From NCBI GenBank assembly GCA_002794465.1, contig MTSL01000132.1, positions 1 to 17,264 of the forward strand: a stretch of DNA of 17,264 nucleotides, in the 5' to 3' direction. Of the stretch, positions 1-15,447 are shown in pieces; within the stretch, counting starts at the first letter, position 1, and each line of letters opens with the position of its first letter. The notes under the pieces are model-generated. The model was given only the letters and a program-made list of their open reading frames with translations. It was not told the origin of the DNA and made no database searches. This DNA comes from Paramicrosporidium saccamoebae KSL3. Lineage: Eukaryota > Fungi > Cryptomycota. Made by a program: the position numbers and the translations under genes.

Positions 1-218
1 GAAAAGGCAGTTTGTCGCAGAGTGCCCAAAACTTGCGAGATGGAGATCTCGGTAAAAAAGCAAGTCTCTGTAGAGGGACTACATACAGTGATGGTGACAG
101 TCCTGACGGGGAGGGGACAACAGTTTAGACAGGCACAGGAGGATTCATAAGTCTCTAATTGTGCCGCCACCGTGCCCAGCAGGCCAACTAGAAGGAGCAC
201 GAGCACCAAGATCCTCAT
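1..218 (-). CDS. N-terminal part of a secreted Cys/Thr-containing protein, paralog of the 6987..7805 protein; runs off the window's left edge
   Basis: Hand translation from ATG at 218: MRILVLVLLLVGLLGTVAAQLETYESSCACLNCCPLPVRTVTITVCSPSTETCFFTEISISQVLGTLRQTAF, open to base 1. The signal peptide and CxCxxCC motif match MRILVLLLGLLLLAAAQTETGCPCDGCCVIRPVTVIIT of the 7805 gene. Not in the supplied ORF track. Confidence 0.85.
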   Translation of the reverse strand, partial: MRILVLVLLLVGLLGTVAAQLETYESSCACLNCCPLPVRTVTITVCSPSTETCFFTEISISQVLGTLRQTAF

Positions 219-593
219 GGAGAGTGCTGGTACTGGAACTATCAAAATAACCCGAGTCTGTCGCCATGACGATTCAGTTGTTCAGTGAGATTTACAGACA
301 CAAGCCTACCTGCAGCTCTATTGGGATCCAAGAGGCTACAATGTCCCGTGGTGTTACAACAACTTAAATACAGGCTAAACGAGAGCTGCTTTTATTATGC
401 CATGTTGTGGAATAGCGATCAAGTCGCTGCGCAACGATTCTTCCTTAAATGCAAACTGGTCCCCTCCCACGTGCTGCGCAGTCTCTACCGTTTTAGTTTC
501 AAAAATTCATAAACCCTTTACTGACAGTTATTCAGCCAACCATTTCTTAACTGGAGGATATCGTCTCCATCAGACGTTGGTCGGTTATCCAAC

Positions 594-1367
594 CTATGGT
601 AAGAAAACGGCCACCGATCGCGTCAATGTAGTGAGAGGTTTAGAGAAAAACGTCAGACTGCTGAACACGCTGATAATACTTGTATCTGAAGAGGTCCTCG
701 TAAAAGGCCATATAGGGACTATTGTACTGAACGACAATCCCAATGAGGGAGTCGAAGTAACAGTGGAAATGGTAATCGTGTCAAAGGAGGTAAAGACGGT
801 CTCTCGGAAGGTGAGCGTCGCAATAAACTTGTATGTGAGATTGAAACTGGTGATGGTCAAGGTGGAGGTGGTGTAGGTAAAGGTAAGATCGGTGAGTACA
901 TCGGGGATTGAAACGGTTACAAAGGATGTCCTGCTTACCACTGAAAAGGCGGTGGAAGTACGGATAGAGGTTCCAGACGTTGTCAGAGTGCTGAATGTTG
1001 TCACAAGTCGCGTGGTGCTGGTAAACTGAGTCGTCACAAAATTGGTGATAACGCGAGTGCTCGTGACGATAATGTCCGAAAAGGTATAGCGCGTAAGGGT
1101 AAAGTTTTCAGTGAGTGTCACAATGACATTGGTGGAAAAGGTGCTGACGGTCACAGAAAGAACCTGCGAAGTCAACACTGTGAATTTGGTGATAGTGGAG
1201 GTGGTGACAGAGGTGGTAGTTCGGAGAACTGAAGTCACTGTGGTAAACTCGGTGGTCATGCAAACTGAAGTTTCCGTGACATAAAGAACCAACGGATCCT
1301 GAGTGACAGTCACGGGCGAACACCATGTCAGCCCAAAGAGGAACAAGATGCACAGGAGCAGTCTCAT
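594..1367 (-). CDS. Secreted Thr/Ser-rich protein A (257 aa), no GPI-like tail
   Basis: ATG at 1367, hydrophobic signal peptide MRLLLCILFLFGLTWCS, Thr-rich body with alternating V/I/F/L. Shares DPLVLY and VLSVTVST with paralogs at 8179 (DPLTVY, LLSVTIST) and 9434 (VTVY, VLSVTVVT). Confidence 0.85.
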   Translation of the reverse strand: MRLLLCILFLFGLTWCSPVTVTQDPLVLYVTETSVCMTTEFTTVTSVLRTTTSVTTSTITKFTVLTSQVLSVTVSTFSTNVIVTLTENFTLTRYTFSDIIVTSTRVITNFVTTQFTSTTRLVTTFSTLTTSGTSIRTSTAFSVVSRTSFVTVSIPDVLTDLTFTYTTSTLTITSFNLTYKFIATLTFRETVFTSFDTITISTVTSTPSLGLSFSTIVPIWPFTRTSSDTSIISVFSSLTFFSKPLTTLTRSVAVFLP

Positions 1368-1455
1368 TATCTCTGTTGATCTTGGTTATTTTGCTAGTCG
1401 AATATATAATCGTCCGTTGCGTTGGTAACCAAGAAGTATTTGTAAAGTTTAAGAT

Positions 1456-1649
1456 CCTTTATTGAAATGTCTGGTCCGCAGATATGACATGTTGCTTGCT
1501 GTAATTACTGCATAGTATGGTGCAGTATCGCGCAGTGGGGATAATGCCACGGACTTTGTCAGGCGTGAAGAGACGGGGAGAAAACCCATTCATTGCTAGA
1601 CTTTGAGTAAAGATCCAGGCCACACTGTCCTCAAATACCCAGCTAATCA
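1456..1649 (+). repeat. Left arm of a degenerate non-coding inverted repeat; partner at 6688..6974
   Basis: 1525..1575 matches the reverse complement of 6850..6900 at 45/51. 1624..1649 matches rc(6688..6713) at 23/26. 1456..1468 matches rc(6962..6974) at 12/13. Short acccatt and gtaaagatc blocks are also shared, in collinear order. Confidence 0.85.
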
Positions 1650-1733
1650 ACCCTCCGTATTATAACCGCATAAATACTAAGCCTAGACAATCCGCTACAA
1701 ACTTACATTGACTATTTACAATGTCATGATATG

Positions 1734-2912
1734 TTATTCATTGTGACGTTGTCGATAAATCTTGACCATTCCATCGTCAGCACAACTAAACAAGGAATCT
1801 TGATGAAACAACACTTGACGGACTTCGAGTTGGTCATGATGGCAAAGCCAGCCTACTGTAAGATCCGGCTTTCGGTTGAGATTCAGCAGAACCACCGATC
1901 CGGTCACGGTGGGTGCAGCCACTAAGGAGCCGCTGACGGCCAGACGCAGGAGCCATGAGTTGGCTTGATACTGCGGATCTGCAAAGACTCGACATTGTTG
2001 AAGTTTGAAAGTGCTCCCAACCAGTGAGAGTCTAAACAGACGGATGGAATTTTCTGCCATTGGCTGTAGAGTGTCATTATTCAGCAATTCCACTCCTCGT
2101 GCCAGCACAAACCAATCTCCCTCCGTGCGCGGATATAGTACCGGGTCCAAATACTGCGGATCCACAATAACGGCGTGGTCGCAGAAGGACGTGAACGCAG
2201 TGTCAAATGACTGTACAAGTCGCATCGACTCCATGTCAAATATGCGCAACTTGTCATCACATGCTGCGAGTAATAGGCGGTCGCCTGTTCCCGGGAGAGG
2301 CTCCACTGAAAACACCATACAGCTGATATCGTCGATCAATCTCGTGTGATTTAGAAGCACTGTCCAATCTGGACTAAATGTCCAGCAGAAAATATATCCA
2401 TCCTGGCTACAGGACAGCAAAATGTTTTGTCCGGCATAGGAAACCTTTTTCAGGAAGAGAATCTCCTCTTCGTGTCCCTCCAGTCTATGCAGCACACTTC
2501 CGTCTGGGTTGAAAACCTTGACAACACCAGGCAGCATTTGATTGTCATCTTCTTCATCGTTCCAGGCGTGCCGGTCTTTTCGTTTCCCCGCCGCGGCATA
2601 GTAATCTTCTAGCCAGACGCCGCAGTAGAATTCCTCAATGGCGGGCTCTTCCCCGTCCCGCAAAGTCCCCAACAGACTCCATTGGTTGTCCTGGTGATAC
2701 CACAATTTCACATGTCCCAGTATGGACACTGTTGCCAACACCCCATCCGGCGACATGGACATTTGCAGGACTGCTCCTTGGTCGCGGATACTCATGGGCA
2801 TCTCTGAAAGCGGATTTTTCGAGTCGACTCGGCAAATTCCATTGTAACCCAGGCAATATGCGGATGTTTGGTATGGAGAAGCGCGGGAAGGCTGGCTGCA
2901 ATGGGTGCTCAT
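1734..2912 (-). CDS. WD40-repeat beta-propeller protein (about 392 aa from ATG 2912)
   Basis: WD40-like blades: LATVSILGHVKLW, LEGHEEEILFL...LLSCSQDGYIFCW, LLAACDDKLRIFD, LFSCADDGMVKIY. The ORF-track start at 2999 is a GTG; the first ATG is at 2912 (MSTHCS). Confidence 0.8.
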   Translation of the reverse strand: MSTHCSQPSRASPYQTSAYCLGYNGICRVDSKNPLSEMPMSIRDQGAVLQMSMSPDGVLATVSILGHVKLWYHQDNQWSLLGTLRDGEEPAIEEFYCGVWLEDYYAAAGKRKDRHAWNDEEDDNQMLPGVVKVFNPDGSVLHRLEGHEEEILFLKKVSYAGQNILLSCSQDGYIFCWTFSPDWTVLLNHTRLIDDISCMVFSVEPLPGTGDRLLLAACDDKLRIFDMESMRLVQSFDTAFTSFCDHAVIVDPQYLDPVLYPRTEGDWFVLARGVELLNNDTLQPMAENSIRLFRLSLVGSTFKLQQCRVFADPQYQANSWLLRLAVSGSLVAAPTVTGSVVLLNLNRKPDLTVGWLCHHDQLEVRQVLFHQDSLFSCADDGMVKIYRQRHNE

Positions 2913-3102
2913 AATGCAAAATTGATCCTGGTTGCCGCCCTGCCTCTTATTGGATCGCAAAATGATTGCAGCGGTGCGACCGCGCAAATACCGGCACACC
3001 TAGTGATGGACAGAACAACTCTAAATTACGATTTACGCGGTTTAGTTCCAGCGCGGGTCAGGCTAGCTGGCTGAATGACTGATATCAATCGGAAACGGAA
3101 AA

Positions 3103-4770
3103 TTATTTAATGCCGCGTGTTTTTAAATATGCTATAGAACCCAATAGGGTGGCAATTGCAATGGGAAGGATAAAGGGGAAGAACAGGGGCAGGTAGACCC
3201 CAAGCTTGTGCTCGTCGGGGAAATATTGATGGGCCATCATGGTGGGATGGAAAAAGGCAGCGTCAGCGAGCTGCATGGCCTGGGTAATTGCCATCAGAGC
3301 CGCCTCAGAACGACCGCGCGAGAGATGCTGTTGGGACGCGCGAAGCAATTCCGCCGATCGACGCACCAATGAACCCACCGCAGGAAGAACAACAATTTCC
3401 GAGTTTTGGGCCAGCAGTCGCTCCAGGGATTGAAGCGTCTTGACAGTTGAGAGCATCCTGGTCTGCAGCAGCCGGGTCATCAAGAGATCCGTCTCGAACG
3501 GGGTTATTCCAGTAATCTCATTGCGTGGCGCTGCCAAACTGCCGGTAAAATCGTTGGTGGAAATATCGATGAGACTGTCCAAATTCAGTCCAAACAGACG
3601 ACGCAACTCGCCCAAAAACGAAGCAACCGCAGGTTTAAGAGAATTGATATCAACCAGTGGCATTTTGCTGTTTAAAATGTAAACACCTCCCCATTGGCGA
3701 TACCCAAAATAAAGTGATTCGGTCCCGTCAATGCCTAATGGTTGAATGGATGACGGAGGAACAAAGACGATGAAATTAATGGCCGAGGCATCGCTAATCG
3801 AAGTTGCCACATTCCACTGATTCTCATTGACAAAGATGGGCAACTGGTCTTCCTGTAGTAGAAAACCCGTGTCAGTTTTGACCGCCTCGACGTGTAGTTC
3901 TGCAAATGATTTTATCTGGAAATGCACTTTAATGTCAGCCATCCTTCGAAGTTGTCCCACCAGCGGCATAAAGTATCTTTGAACCGTCTCATTCATCTGC
4001 CAATCAACCTTGCGGCTCTCGTTCTGCTGTCCCACGACCAACGTAAACGTAATTTGATATCCCGCTGCATCTGGGACCACGCCAGCGCGATCAGAAATCC
4101 CTTGTTGGAAGAGGGTGCTAAATATGGATTCTAGGAATTGCTGTGGGGCATGGAACTCGGGATGGAGGGCGGCACCTGTGCAAATGGCAATCCGACGGCT
4201 TGGATGCATCCAAATATGGAACCCTGACTCGACCATCTTTTCGACAACAAAGAGCTTCATGATGTTATCATTTTCGTCCTTGACCAACAGGCCCGCCAGC
4301 TCCTCTACACTGTCGACGCTCTCGTCAAAGTTGACTTTTGCGAATCGTAGCAGTACCGTTTCCTCAAATGCAACATTGTGCGTCTCGTCGCCCATGGGGC
4401 TTATTCGGAGTTCATCAAGGTCCCATTGCGGGTCGTTGAGATTAACCAGCTGAACTGCCGCTGTCGAGAGACGCGGGAGACGTAGCGGAAGGGTCTCAAG
4501 AGAGGGAAAAGAGAGGGCGGCGCGTGGTACGGCTGTTGTCCACCACCAAACCTGGAACATTATCAGAGTGAGAACGAGAAAGACGAGATAGAGAATGGGT
4601 CTTGTCTCATCGTCCTGTTGGACTATTATCTTTGCATTCGGTTGGACTTTTGTCTTTGTGGCCTGTTGGACTATTGTCTCGGCATTTTGCTGAGCGTCTC
4701 TTGACTGACAAAAACCAGGCTCAGTTACGTCGTCTGGCTTGGCTGACGTATCATCCCGCCTGACCACCAT
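3103..4770 (-). CDS. PIGS: GPI transamidase subunit PIG-S / Gpi17 (555 aa)
   Basis: N-terminal TM followed by WWWTT...R..L, INFIVFVPP, QWGGVYILN, AFFHPTMMAHQYFPDEHKLGVYLPLFFP and a C-terminal TM, all PIG-S family signatures. Track start 4773 is TTG; ATG is at 4770. Confidence 0.93.
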   Translation of the reverse strand: MVVRRDDTSAKPDDVTEPGFCQSRDAQQNAETIVQQATKTKVQPNAKIIVQQDDETRPILYLVFLVLTLIMFQVWWWTTAVPRAALSFPSLETLPLRLPRLSTAAVQLVNLNDPQWDLDELRISPMGDETHNVAFEETVLLRFAKVNFDESVDSVEELAGLLVKDENDNIMKLFVVEKMVESGFHIWMHPSRRIAICTGAALHPEFHAPQQFLESIFSTLFQQGISDRAGVVPDAAGYQITFTLVVGQQNESRKVDWQMNETVQRYFMPLVGQLRRMADIKVHFQIKSFAELHVEAVKTDTGFLLQEDQLPIFVNENQWNVATSISDASAINFIVFVPPSSIQPLGIDGTESLYFGYRQWGGVYILNSKMPLVDINSLKPAVASFLGELRRLFGLNLDSLIDISTNDFTGSLAAPRNEITGITPFETDLLMTRLLQTRMLSTVKTLQSLERLLAQNSEIVVLPAVGSLVRRSAELLRASQQHLSRGRSEAALMAITQAMQLADAAFFHPTMMAHQYFPDEHKLGVYLPLFFPFILPIAIATLLGSIAYLKTRGIK

Positions 4771-4907
4771 CAAGAAACGACAAATTCATTGTCATAAATA
4801 CAACATTTTTGTGAGATAATACATCATGTCTACGGAACAGAGATTCAAATAGTCACTACTACACATTCCGCAGACTTACAAAGCCCTCATTACAAACATT
4901 ACAAATT

Positions 4908-5616
4908 TTATTCGCTTTTTTCAATGACCTTGTCAATCAGTCCAAATTCAACCGCCTCTTGAGCCGTCATGTAGTAATCGCGCTCCATGATCCGTTCAAT
5001 TTTGTCCAACGGCTGTTTGGAGTGCATCGCAATAGTCTCATTCAGTCGACGACGAGTCTTGAGAATCTCCTGGGCGTGGATTGCAATGTCGCTCGCTTGA
5101 CCCTACATGGTGAGCAGCACAGAAAAGGTACAGAGGAACCACCATGTGGCTGGTGGAGCATAAGACGCGCATTAGGGAGGGCAACACGATGTCCTGCAGC
5201 ACCGGCCGTCATCAATACCGCCCCCATTGAGGCGGCTATTCCCATACAGACCGTATACACGGGTGATTTCACATACTAAAAACTTAGCACTACAGTCCAA
5301 CTACTTGCATAGTGTCGTAGATGGCAAATCCGTCAGTAACATGACCGCCGGGCGAGTTAATGTACAAATGGATGGGTTTGGTGTTGTCCTGCGATTCCAA
5401 AAAGAGCAACTGGGCAATGACACTGCTGGCCACGGCAGGATTGATTGCCGAGTGAAGACACACAATACGGTCCTTTAGGAGACGCGAATAAATATCATAG
5501 GCACGCTCTCCAGCCCCCTACTCAGAATCACCGGGCCGTTCTGCACGTCGTACCGAACGCTCAACCACTATGGGCACATAGTTGGAATAGAGTCGCCTCC
5601 TCACTACACCCAGCAT
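4908..5616 (-). CDS. clpP: Mitochondrial ATP-dependent Clp protease proteolytic subunit (204 aa, 4 exons: 5616-5554, 5517-5305, 5275-5132, 5102-4908)
   Basis: Spliced by hand: [21 protein letters not shown]|[19 protein letters not shown]...LYINSPGG...DTMQ|[18 protein letters not shown]...HQPHGGSS|[14 protein letters not shown]...[26 protein letters not shown]. Catalytic Ser (AASMG), His (HQP) and Asp (ERD) are intact, with a short Arg-rich presequence. Confidence 0.96.
5103..5131 (-). other. Spliceosomal intron, 29 nt, phase 0 (ClpP intron 3)
   Basis: gtaccttttctgtgctgctcaccatgtag; removal restores [14 protein letters not shown]. Confidence 0.93.
5276..5304 (-). other. Spliceosomal intron, 29 nt, phase 0 (ClpP intron 2)
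   Basis: gtagttggactgtagtgctaagtttttag; removal restores YDTMQ-YVKSPV. Confidence 0.93.
5518..5553 (-). other. Spliceosomal intron, 36 nt, phase 0 (ClpP intron 1)
   Basis: gtacgacgtgcagaacggcccggtgattctgagtag; its terminal TAG is an in-frame stop; removal gives [22 protein letters not shown]. Confidence 0.9.
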
Positions 5617-5829
5617 TAATTGATTTTTAATAAACCGAGTTTGTCGGTTTCCACTGACACATCCCCCGCCACCATGACGACGATGGATGCTCTTAAAAGA
5701 AACACGGTGCTCTACAACCAGGGAATCACCCACACCCACTAGGAGAGTGCGAGGAATGTATGGCCGATGAAGTCAACCGGGCCAGGGTGGTAAGATTTAT
5801 ATCCTGGAGCCTGAGAGCCGCATTGTGGG

Positions 5830-6420
5830 ATGCTATTGAAAAGCGGAATACCAAAGAATGGAGCACTGGGCAGCTTGATATCAAAGAGTGTGGTGTTTCT
5901 GAAAAGCAAAATATTGGATAATCAGAGGCTGTCTAGTTCCCTTATGGCAAGTCGACGATTGATGAGTTCATTGGCAGGTCAGAGGTTAACGGATCAAAAA
6001 CTGGCAGGTCAGAGACTATCAAATCCAAGACTGACAGGTCAGAGACTAACGAATCTAAGACTGACAAATCCAAGACTGACAAGTCAAAGGCTATACTCGG
6101 AGGACACGGGTCGACTGTTGATAGGGTTTACCTGTAAGGTCTGCGAGACACGGTCTCACCGGACAATGAGTAAGCAGGCATATACAAAGGGAATCGTACT
6201 TGTAGAATGCCCAGGTTGTCAAAACCGGCATTTGATTGCAGATAATCTCGGCTGGTTCGAGCAACGTGGCGAGTCACGCACCATTGAAGAAATGCTTGCG
6301 GCACGAGGCGACTCTGTCCGACGAGCCTGGCGGTCCGATGAGCACGGCAAGATTCTTGAATGTCTCAATGAACCCCCAACTAAAGAACCAAACGATTCTA
6401 CTCGTCTTGAAATAGAATAA
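5830..6420 (+). CDS. ZIM17: DNL-type zinc finger mitochondrial Hsp70 escort protein (Zim17/Tim15/Hep1)
   Basis: FTCKVCETRS...SKQAYTKGIVLVECPGCQNRHLIADNLGWF: two CxxC pairs plus the DNL motif. The long basic N-terminus is presequence-like. The true start may be a downstream Met. Confidence 0.93.
   Translation: MLLKSGIPKNGALGSLISKSVVFLKSKILDNQRLSSSLMASRRLMSSLAGQRLTDQKLAGQRLSNPRLTGQRLTNLRLTNPRLTSQRLYSEDTGRLLIGFTCKVCETRSHRTMSKQAYTKGIVLVECPGCQNRHLIADNLGWFEQRGESRTIEEMLAARGDSVRRAWRSDEHGKILECLNEPPTKEPNDSTRLEIE
5971..6090 (+). repeat. Coding minisatellite, 8 x 15 bp (paired as 30 bp), encoding LxxxR pentapeptides in the Zim17 presequence
   Basis: ttggcaggtcagagg/ttaacggatcaaaaa/ctggcaggtcagaga/ctatcaaatccaaga/ctgacaggtcagaga/ctaacgaatctaaga/ctgacaaatccaaga/ctgacaagtcaaagg. 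Confidence 0.9.
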
Positions 6421-6578
6421 TAAAGATGTATTTGTACAGACTGAGAAAAAGTAGATCCAAGGACCATTCCACCTCGAGCGTACCAGATGATTCTTTTTGA
6501 ACCCATTAGCCTATTGTCGTATTTCAAACACGCCGACCTGATCCAGGTGCACCATTAAATCATCGATCCAAGTACATT

Positions 6579-6671
6579 ATTAAATCAATCCAACCCCATT
6601 CAATCAACCCTCTCACATTAAATCAACTCTTTCACATTAAACCAACACTCCCTCTCAATTAGTCAATCCCC
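6579..6671 (+). repeat. Degenerate ~19-bp C/A-rich tandem repeat (4-5 units)
   Basis: attaaatcaatccaacccc / attcaatcaaccctctcac / attaaatcaactctttcac / attaaaccaacactccctctca / attagtcaatcccc. Confidence 0.7.
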
Positions 6672-6687
6672 ATGTGACGTAGAAGAC

Positions 6688-6974
6688 TGATTAGTTGGGT
6701 ATTTGAAGATAGTTCCTTAGTTTGGAGAAGAGGTAATCAGAACAATCGATGAAGGATAATGAGATCTTTACCATTTGAGGATTATGTTATTTGTGAGACT
6801 ATAAATGGGTCGTTGGATTGACTGAGGAAATTCTCTTCTCGTCCCATCTCGTCTCTTCCCGCCTGACAAAGCCCGTGATATTATCCCCACTACGCGACAC
6901 CCATATACCAAACTAGTTCACATGGGTTAAATAGTGCATTTTCAACGTGTAAATAATATGTATTTCAATACAGG
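6688..6974 (-). repeat. Right arm of the degenerate inverted repeat; partner at 1456..1649
   Basis: Reverse complement contains gtgtcgcgtagtggggataatatcacgggctttgtcaggcgggaagagacg and actatcttcaaatacccaactaatca. It is longer than the left arm because of extra sequence between the conserved blocks. Confidence 0.85.
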
Positions 6975-6986
6975 GAACTACTCCAG

Positions 6987-7805
6987 TTATACCTCATTGA
7001 TCGGAGTAAAGGTAAAGGTGGTGGGCACCGAGACGGTTAGAGTGTTGGGACCGGTGACAAGGTTGACAGTCTCAAAGATAAATTCGGTAACGTCACGGGA
7101 GACGGTAAAGGAACGATTGGTAGGCAGGGTGGCCGTAATCCCGGAAGGAGTGATAGAAAGAGTGTTGGTAAAGGTGGAGGTGAGGGTAAACTGGTAAGTG
7201 CCCGCAATGGTAACGGGATCGAGGGTGTTGGTAAAGACAGTTTGGGTGCGAGAAGTGGTTAGGGTGGGGATGGAAGAGGTGAAAGTATAGGTAGAGGTAT
7301 AGGAAAGGGTACTCTGCCGCTCAATAGTGAAAGTGGTGGTGGTGCTGTAAAAGGTCCAAGTAGTGGTGGTGGGCAGATAGGTAGTACGGGTGATACGCGA
7401 TGTCAGAGTACGGGTGTTAGTGGTGGTGAAGGGGATGATGGTGAACCGGGTGGACAAACTGATGGAATTGGTAAAGGTCGAGGTGATGGTGAGGGTGCGG
7501 GTGGAGGTAGTACGAAAGGTAAAGATAGAAGTAGAGGTGGTGCTACGGATGACCGTGTTGATCTCGGTCAGGAAAATGTTACTCGTACGGGTAAGTATGG
7601 TGGAGGTGGTAATGGTGGTAGGCTGGAACTTTGTGACCGTGTTGATTGAGCGCGTAGTTACGGTACAGGTGCTGGTTTGTGTGCGAGTGCTGGTGATGAT
7701 CACAGTGACGGGTCTGATGACACAGCATCCATCACACGGACATCCTGTCTCTGTCTGTGCTGCCGCCAGAAGCAAAAGCCCCAAAAGCAGGACCAATATC
7801 CTCAT
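6987..7805 (-). CDS. Secreted Thr-rich protein B with N-terminal CxCxxCC motif (272 aa)
   Basis: Track start 7868 is GTG. ATG at 7805 gives signal peptide MRILVLLLGLLLLAAA, then QTETGCPCDGCC and a Thr-rich body with an internal repeat (STFTNSISL / STFTNTLSI). Confidence 0.85.
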   Translation of the reverse strand: MRILVLLLGLLLLAAAQTETGCPCDGCCVIRPVTVIITSTRTQTSTCTVTTRSINTVTKFQPTTITTSTILTRTSNIFLTEINTVIRSTTSTSIFTFRTTSTRTLTITSTFTNSISLSTRFTIIPFTTTNTRTLTSRITRTTYLPTTTTWTFYSTTTTFTIERQSTLSYTSTYTFTSSIPTLTTSRTQTVFTNTLDPVTIAGTYQFTLTSTFTNTLSITPSGITATLPTNRSFTVSRDVTEFIFETVNLVTGPNTLTVSVPTTFTFTPINEV

Positions 7806-8060
7806 TCGTGTCCGCAATACCGTGCCGTGACTGGAGCTGAGACAACAATTATACTTGGCCACAGTCACTAAGCAACCACTAAGAGAGAGGGGGAGTGGGG
7901 GAGGATTATTAATATTCTTGGGGAACTTTTAGAGGGTTTTATTGGGGCATTGCTGTGTTACTGGAAGAGTTATTGAGGAACTTTTAAAGATTTAGTGATG
8001 CTAGTGGGTTATTTGAAAGATCTAAATGGTTTGGACAATTTAGACGCTAGGGAAAATTCC

Positions 8061-8159
8061 ACACTAAACACTAAACACTACAATACTTCTTCATATATCT
8101 CTTAATGACACTACAATATTTTTTCATGACATTACAATATTGCTTCATAGCACTACGAT
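8061..8159 (+). repeat. ~21-bp minisatellite (3 units plus partial) preceded by (acactaa)2, just 3' of gene C
   Basis: acactacaatacttcttcata (8075), acactacaatattttttcatg (8108), acattacaatattgcttcata (8129), gcactacgat (8150). Confidence 0.75.
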
Positions 8160-8178
8160 GCGAACATGTCGCACAATG

Positions 8179-9072
8179 TTATGGTTCGGGTTCTAGATAG
8201 ACAGTCTCGATGGGAGCATAGGCAGTGTAGGGCACAGTACCAGTGGCCAGAAGAGTCAGAGTGAGGGGCGTCTGAGAGGTGGTGGTGCCGATGAACCGGG
8301 TGAGAGAGCGAGTGGTATAACTGAGCTGAGCAGCACTGGCATAGTTGGTGACCGTCTGGGTAATCTGGGCGGCGGCAGTACTGGTGGCAGTGCCGCTAAG
8401 GAAGACAATGTACCCCGTCTCAGTAGTCAAAGTGAAGCTGTCAATACGAGCGACCGCCAAATCGAGCGATTGGGTGTGCTCAATAACACTGGTAATGGTT
8501 CCCTCAAGGGTGGAGATCAGACTGGAGATGGTGGTGAAACGATGGGTGATGGGGAAGAAGATGGTGCGGGTGCGAGTCAGGGAAGTAGTAGCCGTTAATT
8601 CAGTGCGGGTCAGACGCGTGCTGGTGACGATAAAAGTGGTAAAGAATCCGTCAATGGTGGTAGTGACGGTAGTGATCGTGTCCAAAAAGAGGAAACTGGT
8701 CAATACGGAAGTAGTGGTGCTACTGAGTACCAAAGTGCTGGTACGGGTGGAGATGGTCACAGATAACAGACTGGATGTAAAGGTTGATGTCACTGTAAAC
8801 GACGTGGTGGTGGTGCTGGTGGTACGGGACACAATCGTCCGTGTTGTAAACGACACGACAATCTCATCCACAAATTCCACAGAGTACACGGTCAATGGAT
8901 CAAACGTACGCGATGGCGTAATTGGAGGCGGACAGGCCGTGTCTGTTGCAGCCACCGCCTGGCGCAGTTTGCAGAACTGTGCCTCTGCCGAGGGGAACCA
9001 AAAACTGATGGCTAACACTCCAAAGATAAATGCGAGACGCGAAAGGGGAGTGACACTGGGAAAGAGTCTCAT
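8179..9072 (-). CDS. Secreted Thr-rich protein C (297 aa)
   Basis: Track start 9132 is TTG. ATG at 9072 gives MRLFPSVTPLSRLAFIFGVLAISFWFPSAEA-QFC. Contains a Cys pair (QFC...DTAC), DPLTVY and LLSVTIST shared with paralogs. Confidence 0.85.
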   Translation of the reverse strand: MRLFPSVTPLSRLAFIFGVLAISFWFPSAEAQFCKLRQAVAATDTACPPPITPSRTFDPLTVYSVEFVDEIVVSFTTRTIVSRTTSTTTTSFTVTSTFTSSLLSVTISTRTSTLVLSSTTTSVLTSFLFLDTITTVTTTIDGFFTTFIVTSTRLTRTELTATTSLTRTRTIFFPITHRFTTISSLISTLEGTITSVIEHTQSLDLAVARIDSFTLTTETGYIVFLSGTATSTAAAQITQTVTNYASAAQLSYTTRSLTRFIGTTTSQTPLTLTLLATGTVPYTAYAPIETVYLEPEP

Positions 9073-9433
9073 CCGAGTTGGACCGCGAAACACGAGTTGT
9101 GAGCCACGCGAGTCACGAACCAAGAAGCCCAAATGGCTCTCTCATTATAAACAGTTTCGTCGTCATGGATACTCTTTTCAATGGGATGAGAGAGGGAAAA
9201 ATTGAACATGAAGAGTCTACTGTATCAGCTATTACTAAACTACCCTACCCAACTCGCCCATATCACATTACTACTGATCCTGCCTCATTCAACCCTACTA
9301 AACTCCCATCCCCCTCCAACTAAACTCCCCATTAGATCCCATCCAACTGCCCGACCATGAATGGTTGCTAGGTGATGACTGCTGGTTATCATAATACACG
9401 ACACCAACACTCCACTCGAGGCGTCACTATTTC

Positions 9434-10363
9434 ATGGACTATCTGCGTCCACTGCTCCTTCTCTTTTTGACCTTTGTCCTAGTGTCGGCCGCCCGAATCG
9501 ACCGTCTCGATGACAATGCGTTGGCAGCGGACTATGCGGCCCTCTTTGATCCCAATGCCGACGCCAAGGCAATAGGCGGCTGTAATGCAGCTGATGCCAC
9601 ATGCACACCCGACATGTCCACTACTGTGACAGTCTATTCCATCACCTTTACTGAGACGGACACATTGACGGTGACTGTTGTGTCTACCACTACCACGTCC
9701 GTCACCTCTTTCACTACGACCACCACCACTGACACTGTCACCAACACATTTGTCACCACTGTATTGTCAGTGACAGTAGTGACGGATGTGACATCATCAA
9801 CACTCGTCTTTAGTTTCACCACCACAGAGACACCTGTAACCACCACCACCACCACTCGCACCATCACATCCATCAGTTTCACCCTCGCCAGCACTGCGAC
9901 TACCACCGTCGTGTTGACTTTTACGTCCTTTGTGCCAGAAACCACCAGTTTGCCTTTCACCGTGTCCGTTTCTTCCACCATTAGTACCGTCTCCACCCTC
10001 TACACCTCCACCTTTTCACGATTCTCTACCATTACCACACCGGCCACCAGCTTTATTGCTGTGCCCACTACGGCATCAGTGGTGGTGCCTGTCACCTTCT
10101 TCAACACTCTTTCCGTTTCCCTCACCACCACTGCCACTGTTAGCACGCCTACCGACACCATTGTGGAGACTACCATTAACACCATCTTTGCCTCTGTCAC
10201 CACCAGCAACAGCGTCTTTGTCACTGACAGCCGCGCCTTCTTGTACCGGGTCACGGCCCGTGCCACTGAATCTGTTACTACCACCTTCTTTACGCCTTCC
10301 CTACTTACCGAAAGTGTGGAGATTGACTTTACTGTTCCGGTTACACTTACCGTCACAGTGTAG
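9434..10363 (+). CDS. Secreted acidic Thr/Val-rich protein D (309 aa), divergent from gene C
   Basis: ATG 9434, signal peptide MDYLRPLLLLFLTFVLVSA, GCNAADATC (compare AATDTAC in C), VTVYS, VLSVTVVT; strong ACC/ACT codon use. Confidence 0.88.
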   Translation: MDYLRPLLLLFLTFVLVSAARIDRLDDNALAADYAALFDPNADAKAIGGCNAADATCTPDMSTTVTVYSITFTETDTLTVTVVSTTTTSVTSFTTTTTTDTVTNTFVTTVLSVTVVTDVTSSTLVFSFTTTETPVTTTTTTRTITSISFTLASTATTTVVLTFTSFVPETTSLPFTVSVSSTISTVSTLYTSTFSRFSTITTPATSFIAVPTTASVVVPVTFFNTLSVSLTTTATVSTPTDTIVETTINTIFASVTTSNSVFVTDSRAFLYRVTARATESVTTTFFTPSLLTESVEIDFTVPVTLTVTV

Positions 10364-10493
10364 TAACCAGGAGAGGTATGATTCTTTTAGAATAAACTTA
10401 CACACATTGACATGGAACTAATGAGAGGAGGGGTAATAATCGCAGGATCGGAAACGTGTTGGGGCGCCAAGATTATAATAATAGAGCAAGTTG

Positions 10494-10625
10494 CAGTGCA
10501 TAATATCAGTGCATAGTAGCAGTGCATAGTAGCAGTGAATAGTAGCAATGCATCCTAACCAACCCATCTTAACCAGCCCATCTTAATCAGCCCATCCTAA
10601 CCAGCCCAACTTAACCAACCCGTCT
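10494..10625 (+). repeat. Two abutting minisatellites: 13-bp cagtgcatagtag x4-5 (10494-10555) and 14-bp taaccarcccatct x5 (10556-10625)
   Basis: Units read directly: cagtgcataatat, cagtgcatagtag, cagtgcatagtag, cagtgaatagtag, caatgcatcc; taaccaacccatct, taaccagcccatct, taatcagcccatcc, taaccagcccaact, taaccaacccgtct. Confidence 0.9.
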
Positions 10626-10715
10626 CACCCCTCTTGATAGCTCCATGGCAACAGTTCACGCAGTCTACATAATTGCTTTGTAAAGGACTGGAATACAAAC
10701 AACCCCCCAGCCGCA

Positions 10716-10904
10716 ATGCAAGCTCCCAACCTCTTTGTGGTGCTGTCCTTTGTCGTCTTGGCCATGCTATCCATACCCGTAGTAAATGCCGAACCCCACG
10801 CAAATCAGGACATACAGGAACCCCAGCGTCCTGCCCGTATCCGTCAAACCATCTACCGAACTCCCCAAGTTACCGTCACCGTTGCCGCTCCCACTGCTCC
10901 TTAG
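10716..10904 (+). CDS. Small secreted peptide (62 aa, about 37 aa mature) ending QVTVTVAAPTAP
   Basis: ATG start, clear signal peptide MQAPNLFVVLSFVVLAMLSIPVVNA-EP; occupies an otherwise empty slot in the secreted-protein array. Confidence 0.65.
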   Translation: MQAPNLFVVLSFVVLAMLSIPVVNAEPHANQDIQEPQRPARIRQTIYRTPQVTVTVAAPTAP

Positions 10905-10942
10905 CTGTGTCACTAAACCATCTTTATTGTATTGATTGTGTT

Positions 10943-11635
10943 CTAAATGTACATGAACATCAGTGGAAGCACGCATAGGACCGCAAGCATCATCGAATTG
11001 CTTTCATCGGCGGGACTGTGATTTCCCGTAGAGGATGGCGTTGATGTGGACCGTGGCGTCAATGTTACCGTCAGCATTCGCGTCGAAATCACTGTCACTG
11101 TGAGTAGTCGACGCGTTGTAATAGTCCGTGTGCTGGTGGAGGAGACGTTGCGTGGACTCGTCACGGTTCGTGTCGTCGTCTTTCGTACCGTTACTAACAC
11201 GCGCGATGTCAGCAGACGCGTCGATTTTGTGCAAATCGTCTTACTCACTTGAATACGCGTTGTCAGAGTACGAGTGGTTGTCACTAGTTTTGTGCAGTAC
11301 CGAGGAGCCGCAATAGTTCGTGTTGTGGACTTTGTCGTTGTCGTCGATATATTAATCCGCGTTGTCAACGATCGTATCGACGTTCCCGTTGTTGTAGTTG
11401 ACACAATAACTCGCGACGAAATGGTCCTTGTTGATGGAATCACAATGGTTGACGTTATCACTCGATTCGTAGTGATCTGTCTCAGCGTTGTGATCGTCTG
11501 CGTACATGTGCTCGTGCTGATCCGCGTTGTGGACAGTGTGCGTGTTACAGTGATTGTACAATCGGCATGTGCTCTTTGCCATAAAGACAGCAGACACAGC
11601 AATCCCAATACCAAGGACTGCACCCAAACCTTCAT
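10943..11635 (-). CDS. Thr/Arg-rich surface protein E with signal peptide and GPI-anchor-like C-terminus (230 aa)
   Basis: Signal MKVWVQSLVLGLLCLLSLWQRAHA; the C-terminus GNHSPADESNS-MMLAVLCVLPLMFMYI has small residues, a spacer and a terminal hydrophobic tail with no cytosolic charges. Confidence 0.87.
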   Translation of the reverse strand: MKVWVQSLVLGLLCLLSLWQRAHADCTITVTRTLSTTRISTSTCTQTITTLRQITTNRVITSTIVIPSTRTISSRVIVSTTTTGTSIRSLTTRINISTTTTKSTTRTIAAPRYCTKLVTTTRTLTTRIQVSKTICTKSTRLLTSRVLVTVRKTTTRTVTSPRNVSSTSTRTITTRRLLTVTVISTRMLTVTLTPRSTSTPSSTGNHSPADESNSMMLAVLCVLPLMFMYI

Positions 11636-11835
11636 CTTTCCACTCTCTACCCTCCAGCCTATCCCATCTTTTCTTTAATTAGCACTTTCTCAAAATAGAA
11701 ACTTTCCAATTATAGTGCCCAATCAGATAGAGTTTCTCATTATAGCCGACATTCAACAACCTACTGTAGAGCATGAATGCTTCAATAGCACTCTGTCTTT
11801 ATCGCTGACACTAATAATATTAAAAATGAAGCAGC

Positions 11836-11950
11836 TTTAATAACACTCATGAGACATTTTAATAACACTCGTGAAATATTTTAATAACACTCATGAATCA
11901 TTTTAATAACACTCTATCACTATCACTATCACTATCACTATCACTATCAC
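11836..11950 (+). repeat. 22-bp minisatellite x3.6 followed by (tatcac)6 microsatellite
   Basis: tttaataacactcatgagacat (11836), tttaataacactcgtgaaatat (11858), tttaataacactcatgaatcat (11880), tttaataacactc (11902), then tatcac x6 at 11915-11950. Confidence 0.92.
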
Positions 11951-11984
11951 TGACACTCTGCCACTATTGTTGTCAACATTGTAT

Positions 11985-12701
11985 TTACAGACCAAACAGA
12001 ACAGCCACAACAGCAAAGGTGAATGCCCACCAAGCATTGTTGCCACCAGTCTCATTTAGACCAAAGATGGGCTTCAGGTCGGCTGCCGCGTTCAATGACA
12101 AAAGTGCAGTTGCCGAGAAGGATGGTGTCACGGATGCTGTCAGCGTGAGTACCATTGTTCGGGTTTGGCGCTGTGTCGTCGTTACAAAGGTAGTGGCCAC
12201 GATGCGCACCGTACGCGGCGTATATGCCGTGGATGTCGCTTGGATTGTCGTCGTTCCCGTCTGGGTACTCGGAATGGTCTTTGTAAAGCGACGTGTCGTG
12301 GTTCTTGTGACCGTCGATGTTGTGCGTACTAGACACGTCTTTTGTGTCGTCTTAGTTGCCAGTCGGTTGGTAAAGACTGTGGTTGTGAACTGCAAGGTTG
12401 TCGTTCGGATGATCAGATTTGTCAGTGTGATCATAGTCGTTGCTTGCACTGGCTGTGTCCTGATGTTTGTAGTTGTGGAGGGTACCGTTATTGTGAATCG
12501 CGCCGTCGTCGTAATCAGGCGGGTGGACATGCGGGGAACCGTAGTGATTATGCTGGTCGTGACTGTGCGCGTCGAGTAGGTCGTATATGTAAAGGTCCGT
12601 GTGACTGTTCTCGTAACTGTCACTCCATTGATACAGGCCCCATGGATCCCCATAAGCATTGCTGCGCCCAAAAAGAGCCATCGTACAAGGACTTCGCGCA
12701 T
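11985..12701 (-). CDS. Thr/Arg-rich surface protein F with signal peptide and GPI-anchor-like C-terminus (238 aa), paralog of E
   Basis: Signal MREVLVRWLFLGAAMLMGIHG; ACINGVTVTRTVT resembles ADCTITVTRTLS of E; C-terminus NETGGNN-AWWAFTFAVVAVLFGL. Confidence 0.87.
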   Translation of the reverse strand: MREVLVRWLFLGAAMLMGIHGACINGVTVTRTVTRTFTYTTYSTRTVTTSIITTVPRMSTRLITTTARFTITVPSTTTNIRTQPVQATTMITLTNLIIRTTTLQFTTTVFTNRLATKTTQKTCLVRTTSTVTRTTTRRFTKTIPSTQTGTTTIQATSTAYTPRTVRIVATTFVTTTQRQTRTMVLTLTASVTPSFSATALLSLNAAADLKPIFGLNETGGNNAWWAFTFAVVAVLFGL

Positions 12702-14271: not shown

Positions 14272-15447
14272 CTACTGCTGCTGGGACCATGGATTAGGAT
14301 TTGTGCCAGTTGTCGGAGGGACATTCCAAGGTTGCTGAGCACCAGATGCGGGAGGAACATTCCAGGGCTGCTGAGCGCCAGATACCGGAGGAACATTCCA
14401 AGGCTGTTGAGAACCAGGCGCCAAAGGAGCATTCCATGGTGATGCACCGTACTGCTCGGGTGCCTTTGGCTTGTCTCCAATGTCTGCAAGAAAGTCATTG
14501 TAGGCAGTGTCCATCTGTTCAGATCGAATCCTGGATTGCTGGATCATGTCGGGATTGTCGCGGTGCATACAATCCGAAGCAATGTGTCCTGCGCCTCCAC
14601 AAATGCGACACAGCAGATTGTTTGTGACATTACGACGTTCTGTACATTCAAAGCGACGATGTCCCGATTGACCACAGTTACCGCAGATGATAGCATCTTC
14701 GTCCCGCAGGGTTCCATTAAGTGCTGCCAATTCCCGAAGTTGAATTCGTTTCAGCTCGTTTGCCTCCTCAGGCATGCTGGCAGCCGTCTCAATAATTTTG
14801 TTGATAATGCGTACGCATTTGTCAATCTTTTCCAATGTGTCGCCCATAACCAGTGCGTGCAATTCTTCATCGGCCGCCGCAAGAGATGCTGGGTCATTCT
14901 TGCCTTCTTTCAGAGAGCCCTTTCCACGAATAGATATCTTTGTTCCCGTCTCGCTTTCCATCTTCTTTAAAGTGTTCCCGCGCGGTCCAATTAGCAGACC
15001 AATAAAGTTAATGTCGGGATACTCTCTTTGTGGAATCCACACCTTTTCCTGAAACTTGTAGGAACCACCTCCGATACGTTTATCACGGGCGCCAGGTCCA
15101 AAGAGATGCCGGTCGAGCCAAGTGTTGTAATCCACGTCAGTCGAGTATTCTGGGTTATTCTGCAGCGCAGACTCGATAAGTCTTGAACGCTCGTCTTCAA
15201 GTTTTTTGCGATAGCATTCTTCTCGTTCGCTGTTCTGCCCTACGGAAGATGTCGACTCGCGAAACGGGAAAACGTTTCCACTCTTCAGCTTTCGGTTGAT
15301 TTCCTCCAGCCGAATATACACGACATATGACTTGAGCTGGCTCTCTGTGAGTCCAGGAGGAAGCTCAGTGGGCATTCCTGGAAACTCGGCTCGCTCATTC
15401 TTAGGTCCCCAGCGACTAGTTCGGCTGGCAGGTGTTGCTGTCGACAT
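14272..15447 (-). CDS. SF1: Splicing factor 1 / branchpoint-binding protein (SF1/BBP/Msl5), about 391 aa
   Basis: SRWG U2AF-ligand motif, KH domain NFIGLLIGPRGNTLKKME...IRGKGS, QUA2 LKRIQLRELAALNGTLR, two zinc knuckles (CGNCGQSGHRRFEC, CRICGGAGHIASDC). Track start 15498 is TTG; ATG is at 15447. Confidence 0.96.
   Translation of the reverse strand: MSTATPASRTSRWGPKNERAEFPGMPTELPPGLTESQLKSYVVYIRLEEINRKLKSGNVFPFRESTSSVGQNSEREECYRKKLEDERSRLIESALQNNPEYSTDVDYNTWLDRHLFGPGARDKRIGGGSYKFQEKVWIPQREYPDINFIGLLIGPRGNTLKKMESETGTKISIRGKGSLKEGKNDPASLAAADEELHALVMGDTLEKIDKCVRIINKIIETAASMPEEANELKRIQLRELAALNGTLRDEDAIICGNCGQSGHRRFECTERRNVTNNLLCRICGGAGHIASDCMHRDNPDMIQQSRIRSEQMDTAYNDFLADIGDKPKAPEQYGASPWNAPLAPGSQQPWNVPPVSGAQQPWNVPPASGAQQPWNVPPTTGTNPNPWSQQQ
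14310..14440 (-). repeat. 36-bp coding tandem repeat x4 (PWNVPPxSGAQQ) at the SF1 C-terminus
   Basis: acattcca/gcattcca recurs at 14321, 14357, 14393 and 14429 (period 36). Confidence 0.9.

Follow-up and report, generated by a model that had tools for sequence, protein, structure and literature searches.

Trypanosome mucins, whose genes form arrays, are small, GPI-signal-bearing proteins in which a signal peptide precedes a Thr-rich centre of Pro-containing, hypervariable repeats. The Ser/Thr-rich secreted or GPI-anchored wall glycoproteins of fungi, such as the yeast GPI-CWPs, are likewise small, carry signal peptides and form local gene families. Typically, their Ser/Thr-rich mature part bears O-mannose and is bound covalently to glucan or chitin of the wall, and their GPI attachment signal consists of a small omega region, a polar spacer and a terminal hydrophobic tail. 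In Candida, the T domain of the Als adhesins is a conserved, folded, Thr-rich domain of a surface protein, and dense O-glycosylation would oppose tight β packing (PMC9306254). The genes for microsporidian polar tube proteins (PTPs) evolve rapidly and sit in small clusters, an acidic, O-mannosylated product being paired with a basic one (PMC10229552); homology searches for proteins of the PTP1/PTP2 type fail because of this rapid divergence. PTP1 is Pro-rich and acidic, and PTP2 is Lys-rich and basic with eight conserved Cys. The spores of Paramicrosporidium saccamoebae (Rozellomycota), a parasite of amoebae, bear a polar filament, and HMMs of microsporidian polar filament proteins matched nothing in its predicted proteome (PMC5701793).

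Here, we analysed P. saccamoebae contig MTSL01000132.1, which is covered end to end by the window (the whole stretch of 17,264 nt). A preliminary description of this DNA had claimed seven secreted, Thr-rich, intronless ORFs. All seven (frag0 and A–F) were found, uninterrupted, where it had placed them. Signal peptides and GPI signals were called by simple rules of thumb rather than by trained predictors. The features, in window coordinates, are as follows:

1–218, minus strand: frag0, the first 72 codons of a gene for a B-like secreted protein, cut by the contig end
117–137, minus strand: CxCxxCC motif of frag0 (CACLNCC, residues 28–34)
594–1367, minus strand: gene A, 257 aa, 28% Thr, signal peptide, DPLxxY, VLSVTV and LTRYTFSDI motifs, no GPI tail
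1068–1316, minus strand: Thr-rich core of A (codons 18–100), dN/dS 0.04, 93–96% identity per 30-residue block
3103–4773, minus strand: PIG-S subunit of GPI transamidase (Pfam PF10510, E = 1e-75), context outside the Thr-rich set
6987–7805, minus strand: gene B, 272 aa, 32% Thr, signal peptide, N-terminal CPCDGCC, no GPI tail
7722–7742, minus strand: CxCxxCC motif of B (CPCDGCC, residues 22–28), with the same residues in the orthologue
8179–9072, minus strand: gene C, 297 aa, 25% Thr, signal peptide, two N-terminal Cys, DPLTVY and LLSVTIST, pI 5.7, no GPI tail
8503–8979, minus strand: Thr-rich core of C (codons 32–190), dN/dS 0.03–0.04
9434–10363, plus strand: gene D, 309 aa, 29% Thr, signal peptide, acidic (pI 4.1), VLSVTVVT, no GPI tail, divergent from C
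9614–10078, plus strand: Thr-rich core of D (codons 61–215), dN/dS 0.03
10716–10904, plus strand: 62-aa ORF with a signal-like N-terminus, doubtful as a gene
10943–11635, minus strand: gene E, 230 aa, 27% Thr, 10% Arg, pI 12, signal peptide and GPI-signal-like C-terminus
10946–10993, minus strand: hydrophobic C-terminal tail of E (MMLAVLCVLPLMFMYI), preceded by the polar spacer NHSPADESNS and S-T-G
11985–12701, minus strand: gene F, 238 aa, 29% Thr, 8% Arg, pI 12, signal peptide and GPI-signal-like C-terminus
11988–12035, minus strand: hydrophobic C-terminal tail of F (AWWAFTFAVVAVLFGL)

A signal-like N-terminus, in which a hydrophobic h-region is followed by a small −3/−1 site, begins each of the seven Thr-rich ORFs (in frag0, MRILVLVLLLVGLLGTVAA/Q). 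The crude signal rule was passed by 12 of the 59 ATG-ORFs in the window, including A–E and the 62-aa ORF, with F falling just below the threshold. An uncharged, hydrophobic C-terminal 15-mer with no residues beyond it was found in E and F only (2/59 ORFs), and the S-T-G upstream of the E tail is a candidate omega site. By this rule of thumb, the GPI-tailed type would comprise E and F, as the preliminary description had proposed, and A, B, C and D lack such tails. The PIG-S gene on the same contig indicates that the organism possesses the transamidase on which E and F would depend. Thr makes up 25–32% of A–F (14% of the short frag0 piece), Pro 3–5% and Gly 1–4%, and the mature proteins contain 38–46% Ser plus Thr and 31–39% hydrophobic residues. 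All four Thr codons are used, no tandem repeats were found inside the Thr-rich ORFs, and the ORFs are not simple DNA repeats. The bias towards C-ending codons is strongest in B. On the antisense strand, the Thr-rich ORFs are accompanied by long, Val-rich open frames; DNA of this kind remains open in more than a single frame.

Two metagenome contigs of a closely related organism (L002 and L003) cover A–D and allowed the reading frames to be compared. Coding DNA is 81–87% identical and almost gap-free, while intergenic DNA is 56–68% identical and gappy. The dN/dS ratios of the four genes lie between 0.04 and 0.14, with no stops: 0.117 over the first 200 codons of A, which has a full-length orthologue on L003; 0.037 over the first 88 codons of B (L002, 92% identity); 0.137 for C, which has a full orthologue at L002:1037–1954 (87% identity); and 0.103 over codons 1–215 of D (L002, 92% identity, no gaps). 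The antisense frame that shares wobble positions contains stops in both species, and in A every other frame is interrupted by stops, including that on the strand annotated in GenBank. This purifying selection and the lack of stops show A–D to be real genes, read in the Thr-rich frame. The GenBank models of B and C are the ORFs as read here. A and E, however, are absent from the GenBank proteome, and D and F are present only inside fusions. The D fusion uses the 62-aa ORF as its last exon and needs an intron of 301 nt; the other joins F to an out-of-frame piece of E via an intron of 330 nt. These introns would excise only a stop codon and intergenic repeats; both introns that can be verified in the window measure 29 nt. 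The GenBank models thus look wrong for four genes (A, D, E and F).

Relationships among the proteins were assessed by comparing Smith–Waterman scores with those of composition-preserving shuffles. Within the contig, z was 8.5 for A–C, 6.9 for B–frag0, 5.6 for C–D and 5.1 for E–F. The five Cys of frag0 align with those of B, and E and F are 32% identical and collinear from end to end. Scores between E or F and A–D did not exceed 3.1. Of the three subfamilies originally distinguished, B/frag0, A/C and E/F were recovered in this way, but D belongs only loosely with A and C: it lacks DPLxxY, its score with B (z = 5.7) matches that with C, and its score with A is 1.3. Homology is supported inside the subfamilies (z = 5.1–8.9), the upper value being that of A with a distant metagenomic homologue (P0004) of the same layout. 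Between the three subfamilies no homology was detected: composition-corrected BLASTP gave E ≥ 0.02 for all pairs, and hhalign matched signal peptides only. The suggestion that all seven are paralogs is therefore not borne out by BLASTP, hhalign or the shuffle tests. The proteins had also been said to belong to no recognised family, and here the searches agree. No Pfam model matched at E ≤ 1, nor did any PDB sequence; when 1.84 billion proteins were searched exhaustively with profiles, only two orthologues (fragments) and the distant P0004 came back. Most likely, the genes are limited to Paramicrosporidium and close relatives and arose by local duplication.

The claim that these proteins are poor in Pro and Gly and unlike mucins in composition is upheld by the percentages given above and by their position on the ordered side of the charge–hydropathy (Uversky) plot (mean hydropathy 0.49–0.56). 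The claim of a β-strand-like character fares less evenly. Mean β propensity is raised (1.11–1.16, compared to 0.94–1.04 in neighbouring housekeeping proteins), but AlphaFold2 gave no confident fold: pLDDT was 35 and 28, and the models were mostly coil with hardly any secondary structure. Since the alignments had only 4–5 rows, this result is uninformative rather than contrary. The alternation of Thr with hydrophobic residues is weak, with a Ser/Thr lag-2 autocorrelation of about +0.2 in B, C and D, and E and F show a 6-residue period instead. Constraint on the genes is strongest in the Thr-rich cores, with dN/dS of 0.03–0.04, compared to 1.07 (near-neutral) in the N-terminal, non-Thr region of D (codons 21–60), 0.38 in the C-terminus of A and 0.29 in the C-terminal third of C. 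Within the cores, 96% of 233 Thr positions are kept, indels are absent and only 11 Ser/Thr swaps occur among ≈330 Ser/Thr positions. This constraint is unlike that of typical disordered mucin stalks, and such strong positional constraint fits an ordered structure.

On balance, we consider it probable that these are lineage-specific, secreted or GPI-anchored, ordered proteins of the surface or spore wall, presumably O-mannosylated; glycosylation, anchoring, ordered β structure and location are all inferred from the sequences. An N-terminal signal peptide would route each protein of 230–310 aa into the ER, where the abundant Thr and Ser would probably become O-mannosylated. In E and F, the transamidase would exchange the C-terminal hydrophobic peptide for a GPI anchor, and we propose that this places these basic proteins (pI ≈ 12) at the interface between plasma membrane and wall. 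The anchorless A–D and the B-like frag0 would enter the wall or surface layer on release and be retained there by non-covalent, β-type contacts or, in the B type, by the N-terminal five-Cys motif. The working part would be the non-repetitive core of Thr plus V/I/L/F, acting as an ordered structural module rather than as a flexible mucin stalk. Judged from these features, the proteins most likely serve as structural components of the parasite's surface or of its spore wall.

Compared to known systems, the proteins resemble the fungal wall glycoproteins in their signal peptides, Ser plus Thr content, small size and local gene families and, for E and F only, in a GPI-signal-like C-terminus. They differ in having no sequence relation to them and no tandem repeats, in a Thr content far above that of Ser, in very low Pro and high hydrophobic content, in that the low-complexity core is the most conserved part, and in that four or five of the seven lack an anchor signal. 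The cores share with the Als T domain a highly conserved, Thr-rich, low-complexity sequence of 100–200 residues with β-branched aliphatics, and the Als T domain is folded (PMC9306254). This domain is the best functional analogy for the cores, which by that analogy could make β-sheet contacts and possibly aggregate in a force- or density-dependent manner. Unlike in the Als adhesins, there is no Ig-like/invasin N-domain, no 36-residue repeat, no long stalk and no Pfam ALS match, and the Thr-rich module is nearly the whole protein.

Disordered, mucin-like glycoproteins, in which composition alone matters and the Thr/Ser stretch serves only as a heavily O-mannosylated stalk or glycocalyx of extended form (many fungal GPI wall proteins and protozoan mucins are of this kind), would also account for the Ser plus Thr content, the signal peptides and the GPI-like tails on E and F. 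The lack of any detected domain and the low-confidence, mainly coiled AlphaFold2 models (from 4–5-row alignments) would fit as well. We nevertheless regard this as unlikely: Pro is scarce, hydrophobic residues are abundant, hydropathy falls on the ordered side, tandem repeats are absent, and the cores combine low dN/dS with a lack of indels and few Ser/Thr swaps. E and F have the layout of protozoan GPI-anchored mucins, but they are non-repetitive and Arg-rich, with ≈31% hydrophobic residues. Nor do the proteins match a mucin PTS domain, a region of Pro/Thr/Ser-rich tandem repeats that is disordered and varies in length: Pro is low, repeats are absent, hydropathy is on the ordered side, and the cores are indel-free and constrained. 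On disorder itself, the low AlphaFold2 confidence weighs neither way.

A more speculative proposal, and a long shot, is that the acidic, secreted C and D and the very basic, putatively GPI-anchored E and F co-assemble by ordered Thr-ladder β sheets into a filament or sheath, and would be the missing structural proteins of the rozellid spore invasion apparatus or wall. If true, the spore would rely on proteins that share no sequence ancestry with those of the microsporidian polar tube, and this would bear on whether the polar filament had a single origin and on its first material. Also improbable is the idea that the proteins are parts of the invasion apparatus (polar filament, anchoring or sheath layers) that substitute for the microsporidian PTPs. 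Like PTP1 and PTP2, they are secreted, belong to a related parasite lineage, are encoded by clustered genes and have Cys near the ends, and the acidic C and D (pI 5.7 and 4.1) adjoin the very basic E and F (pI 12), as PTP clusters pair acidic and basic members (PMC10229552). The published negative HMM result came from a proteome without A and E and with D and F only fused, so these four proteins were not properly examined by that search. Against this, the Pfam and profile searches, including Pfam-A, found no similarity to known proteins, and the composition of the Thr-rich ORFs is unlike that of the Pro-rich PTP1 and Lys-rich PTP2: they are rich in Thr, and the basic members are rich in Arg, with 2–4 Cys rather than eight. 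The GPI-like tails of E and F would, moreover, indicate a membrane or wall anchor rather than a tube.

Parasite effectors commonly have signal peptides, are restricted to a lineage and lie in gene clusters, as is the case here, and evolution is fast in the C-terminal parts of A and C and in the N-terminal part of D; it is very improbable, however, that these proteins are secreted into the host amoeba to act on host processes in its nucleus or cytoplasm, since the extreme Thr/hydrophobic composition, the core constraint and the two GPI-type tails fit structural surface proteins better.

The 62-aa ORF had been listed as a further secreted peptide. Its signal-like start stands, but nothing further supports it as a gene: five other spurious-looking short ORFs pass the crude signal rule with starts as good, and no relatives were found. 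Nor was an orthologue of E or a relative of F found. These observations, the Thr codon usage of E and F, which differs from that of A–D, and the long Val-rich antisense ORFs in the same DNA would fit the least probable reading, that E, F and especially the 62-aa ORF are chance frames in A+C-rich DNA, or that the GenBank fusions are correct; E and F, however, each pair a signal-like start with one of the window's only two GPI-like ends and are collinear, the same argument from ORF architecture held for A–D, and the fusions need introns far longer than the verifiable ones.

We know of no spore-wall, surface or polar-filament protein identified in Paramicrosporidium so far, and this contig supplies seven candidates with secretion signals. 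Screens based on the proteome could not see four of them properly, since the public annotation either omits these or models them incorrectly. Non-repetitive sequence with ≈30% Thr that is kept almost residue for residue suggests that low-complexity sequence can act as a tightly folded or tightly interacting module. If these proteins are ordinary wall mannoproteins, the gain would be a corrected annotation and a warning about Val-rich antisense miscalls of Thr-rich genes. If they are components of the wall or filament, they would provide a handle on the evolution of the microsporidian type of infection apparatus.

The window comprises contig MTSL01000132.1 (assembly GCA_002794465.1) in full. 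The ORFs listed in the preliminary description were all present in it, as follows:

1–218, reverse strand: frag0, the first 72 codons of a Thr-rich ORF, the rest of the gene lying beyond the contig end
594–1367, reverse strand: A, Thr-rich ORF
6987–7805, reverse strand: B, Thr-rich ORF
8179–9072, reverse strand: C, Thr-rich ORF
9434–10363, forward strand: D, Thr-rich ORF
10716–10904, forward strand: 62-aa ORF
10943–11635, reverse strand: E, Thr-rich ORF
11985–12701, reverse strand: F, Thr-rich ORF

A–F contain 25–32% Thr and 5–14% Ser, with 3–5% Pro and 1–4% Gly, and hydrophobic residues make up 31–39% of the mature parts. By a rule-based reading, all seven Thr-rich ORFs have the secreted-type N-terminus that had been proposed for them, a hydrophobic stretch followed by a small −3/−1 site. 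The rule is deliberately crude: applied to the 59 ATG-initiated ORFs of ≥50 aa in the window, it passed 12, including A–E and the 62-aa ORF, with F just under the cut. A signal-like start on all of the long Thr-rich ORFs is well above the background rate, roughly one in eight. An uncharged hydrophobic C-terminal 15-mer was found in only two of the 59 ORFs, E and F, and both proteins terminate directly at this hydrophobic tail. A protein with a GPI signal stops at its hydrophobic tail, which a protein with a transmembrane anchor usually does not. The isoelectric points (D, 4.1; C, 5.7; A, 9.0; B, 9.7; E and F, 12.0) give a strong charge contrast.

Searches with Tandem Repeats Finder and a repeat finder detected no tandem repeats within the ORFs apart from short runs of a few codons, and the ORFs draw on all four Thr codons, which rules out microsatellite-like artefacts. 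Thr codon choice divides the cluster, with ACA/ACG at 71–81% in E and F and ACC/ACT at 68–89% in A–D; B has the strongest bias towards C-ending codons (ACC 65%, ATC 70%, GTC 62%). This split could stem from the level of expression, the age of the genes or their mutational context. N-x-S/T sequons are rarer than composition predicts in B (1 observed, 4.7 expected; shuffle P ≈ 0.03) and in D (0 observed, 3.0 expected; shuffle P ≈ 0.02). The numbers are small, and the shortage may reflect avoidance of N-glycosylation.

ACN-rich DNA tends to be open in the antisense GTN, or Val-rich, frame as well, and the window contains long antisense ORFs of this kind. GenBank models only B and C as the ORFs described here, and E is absent as such. 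The competing frames and models are:

8345–9205, forward strand: Val-rich ORF antisense to a Thr-rich gene
9634–9996, reverse strand: Val-rich ORF antisense to a Thr-rich gene
11893–12579, forward strand: Val-rich ORF antisense to a Thr-rich gene
418–1232, forward strand: GenBank model in the A region, opposite to the conserved ORF at 594–1367
9434–10904, forward strand: GenBank model joining D to the 62-aa ORF via a 301-nt intron
11352–12701, reverse strand: GenBank model joining F to an out-of-frame piece of E via a 330-nt intron

When C was used as the query, the one relative recovered was a JGI metagenome protein. Its 2.6-kb contig (L002) is syntenic with window positions 10078–7541 and includes the 5′ two-thirds of D, all of C, and B as far as codon 88. 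The coding DNA is 81–87% identical and almost gap-free, whereas the two intergenic regions are 56–68% identical and gappy. In the Thr-rich frame there were no stop codons, and dN/dS (Nei–Gojobori) was 0.137 for C, 0.103 for D and 0.037 for B. On the antisense strand, the frame with the same wobble positions gave dN/dS of 0.12–0.19, yet had stops in both species, and the remaining frames gave values above 1. An orthologue of A, found by exhaustive profile search on a second metagenome contig (L003), is a full-length ORF whose start and final residues match those of A, with dN/dS of 0.12 across the first 200 codons. The GenBank model on the opposite strand of the A region could be ruled out, since every frame of that strand has stops. 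Given the low dN/dS without stops and the orthologues on both contigs, A, B, C and D are real, uninterrupted genes, in the frame and on the strand first assigned to them.

For E and F, the case for genes is made by analogy to A–D, together with their signal-like starts, the only two GPI-like ends in the window and a collinear end-to-end alignment of the two proteins at 32% identity. The introns of the GenBank fusions of D and F would excise just a stop codon and repeat-filled intergenic DNA. They are also ten times larger than the introns that can be verified, which lie in the neighbouring ClpP gene, read against conserved ClpP motifs:

5273–5301, reverse strand: ClpP intron, 29 nt, plain GT..AG
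5103–5131, reverse strand: ClpP intron, 29 nt, plain GT..AG

Introns in this genome can thus be very short, and both fusion models are unlikely. The 62-aa ORF is doubtful as a gene. Short intergenic tandem repeats surround the Thr-rich genes (10475–10625, 11836–11957, 8061–8156 and 6540–6650), with units of 13/26, 14, 22, 6 (CTATCA ×6), 21, 25 and 19 nt, and they fall in the stretches taken as introns by the fusion models. A 10-mer, TATAATGAGA, lies upstream of E (within 11636–11935) and upstream of C, where the intergenic DNA is shared with D (within 9073–9433); the sequence upstream of the 62-aa ORF also has an 8-mer core of it. With the C/D intergenic region counted once, no k-mer common to the upstream regions, TATAATGAGA included, exceeded shuffle expectation.

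The rest of the genes in the window are of ordinary eukaryotic housekeeping type and encode a WD40 protein, PIG-S (a GPI-transamidase subunit), ClpP, a DNL zinc-finger protein, a WAPL-like protein, splicing factor SF1 and a HAD hydrolase. In the DNL zinc-finger (Zim17-like) protein, the N-terminal part (5959–6093, forward strand) has some six degenerate repeats of 15 nt (5 residues), of GQRLT or NPRLT type, and the C-terminus of the SF1-like protein (14305–14439, reverse strand) contains 3.6 copies of a 36-nt repeat encoding QQPWNVPPxSGA-type units.

Composition-corrected BLASTP gave no significant match between any pair of window proteins (the best was B–frag0, E = 0.02), and without the correction the score is mostly composition. 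We chose shuffle z-scores (Smith–Waterman scores of the mature regions against 300 shuffles each), since composition-adjusted BLASTP misses even the match between A and P0004, a distant metagenomic homologue of A/C type, which is supported by HMMER and by shuffles. The resulting scores were 8.5 for A–C, 6.9 for B–frag0, 5.7 for B–D, 5.6 for C–D, 5.1 for E–F, 3.9 for A–B and at most 3.1 for E or F against A–D. B and frag0 have five aligned Cys in common, including CxCxxCC. The proposed division into three subfamilies (B and frag0; A, C and D; E and F) is reasonable by these scores, but D is just loosely attached. Profile–profile comparison between the three subfamilies matched the signal peptide only. 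From their position and composition, a single origin of all seven ORFs is plausible.

Pfam gave no match to the Thr-rich proteins at E ≤ 1 except one at chance level, and sequence searches of the PDB gave chance-level matches only. An exhaustive search of 1.84 billion representative proteins with an A/C/D profile returned three matches: fragments of the C and A orthologues, and P0004 (E = 2.2 × 10⁻⁴). P0004 is 276 aa long and comes from one sample each of ENA and JGI. It has a signal peptide, two Cys in its N-terminal part and a DP motif, and its motifs TTEFT, VLSVTV and LTRYTFxDI follow the order seen in A. With z-scores of 8.9 against A and 7.1 against C, it indicates that the A/C type reaches at least one more distant organism. 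As judged from sequence, the Thr-rich family is otherwise an orphan and new, in agreement with the earlier failure to recognise a known family. A metagenome scan with an alignment of A, its orthologue and P0004 gave 124 pattern matches, none of them confirmed. Contigs already known from the protein searches were also not recovered, so the collection or the tblastn filter is blind to this family. No orthologue of frag0 was recognisable on contig L005, downstream of the A orthologue. Two of the four genes called by the metagenome pipeline on L002 (74–445 and 1051–1455) are antisense Val-rich frames. Prokaryotic gene callers often choose this frame, which makes metagenome protein sets a poor mirror of the Thr-rich family; protein databases probably include spurious Val-rich proteins while lacking the genuine Thr-rich ones.

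Synonymous divergence between the two taxa is appreciable (dS ≈ 0.4–0.9 in most segments). In the Thr-rich cores, per-block identity to the orthologues was mostly 93–100%, indels were absent, and 96% of 233 Thr positions were kept. Core dN/dS was 0.04 in A (codons 18–100), 0.03–0.04 in C (codons 32–190) and 0.03 in D (codons 61–215), as against 0.38 and 0.29 in the C-terminal parts of A and C and about 1.07 in the non-Thr N-terminal region of D (codons 21–60, 9494–9613). The low-complexity part is the constrained part. D codons 21–60 include two Cys, of which one is Phe in the orthologue; the pair is therefore not a conserved disulfide. The C-terminal quarter of A (594–770, ≈57 codons; L003:850–1038) is almost unalignable, with 27% identity in one 30-residue block and no blastn match. 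The last ten residues of A, given as TRSVAVFLP, are kept in the orthologue, leaving a variable segment between conserved ends.

Mean hydropathy (0.49–0.56) places the proteins well within the ordered side of the charge–hydropathy boundary, and beta propensity is higher than in the neighbouring housekeeping proteins. These indicators and the low Pro and Gly agree with the constraint on the cores, and the view that the proteins are unlike disordered mucins in composition holds, though this is no proof of a fold. AlphaFold2 produced hardly any secondary structure (mean pLDDT 35 for C with a 4-row alignment, 28 for A with a 5-row alignment), a result that at this alignment depth cannot tell a folded orphan from a disordered protein. 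The suggested alternation of Thr with hydrophobic residues was borne out in part: the Ser/Thr pattern has a weak period of 2 in B, C and D, but a period of 6 in E and F.

The best explanation, to which we lean with modest confidence, is that these are lineage-specific secreted and GPI-anchored surface or spore-wall proteins with ordered cores. The proteins would enter the ER and receive O-mannose on some Thr and Ser. E and F would be GPI-anchored at the interface between membrane and wall, and A–D and the B-like frag0 would be released into the wall or surface layer. The cores of Thr and V/I/L/F would form ordered, probably beta-rich modules packing with each other or with wall polymers. PIG-S, a subunit of the enzyme that processes GPI-type ends, is encoded on the same contig. 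The best functional analogy for the cores is the T domain of the Candida Als adhesins, a conserved, folded, Thr-rich domain with an amyloid-forming core (PMC9306254). The Thr-rich proteins are not members of the Als family, since they lack an Ig-like domain and 36-residue repeats and have no Pfam match. Fungi and protists are well known to have Ser/Thr-rich surface proteins that are secreted and GPI-anchored. Unlike the usual proteins of this kind, the present family is non-repetitive, Pro-poor and hydrophobic-rich, and its conservation peaks just where its Thr content does.

That last property also bears on a plain disordered, mucin-like coat, which we consider unlikely. In a mucin-type stalk it is composition that matters, and sequence and length drift; here, the Thr-rich cores are the most constrained parts, the opposite of that expectation.

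A role in the invasion apparatus, as components of the polar filament, has a small probability. We know of no polar filament protein in P. saccamoebae, and the published HMM search used a proteome without proper models of four of these genes. P. saccamoebae, an intranuclear amoeba parasite of the Rozellomycota, has a polar filament in its spores (PMC5701793), and microsporidian PTP genes also form small clusters in which an acidic O-mannosylated protein is paired with a basic one (PMC10229552). The compositions differ from those of PTPs, however, and the GPI-like tails of E and F favour anchoring. Host-directed effectors are slightly less probable again. Least probable is that E, F and the 62-aa ORF are mis-modelled or not genes: no relatives of E were confirmed among 600 matches to six 8-residue patterns in a metagenome scan and none of F were found by protein search, but the starts, the ends and the alignment of E and F speak against it.

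The analysis corrects the annotation of this cluster, and its products are testable candidates as surface or spore-wall proteins.
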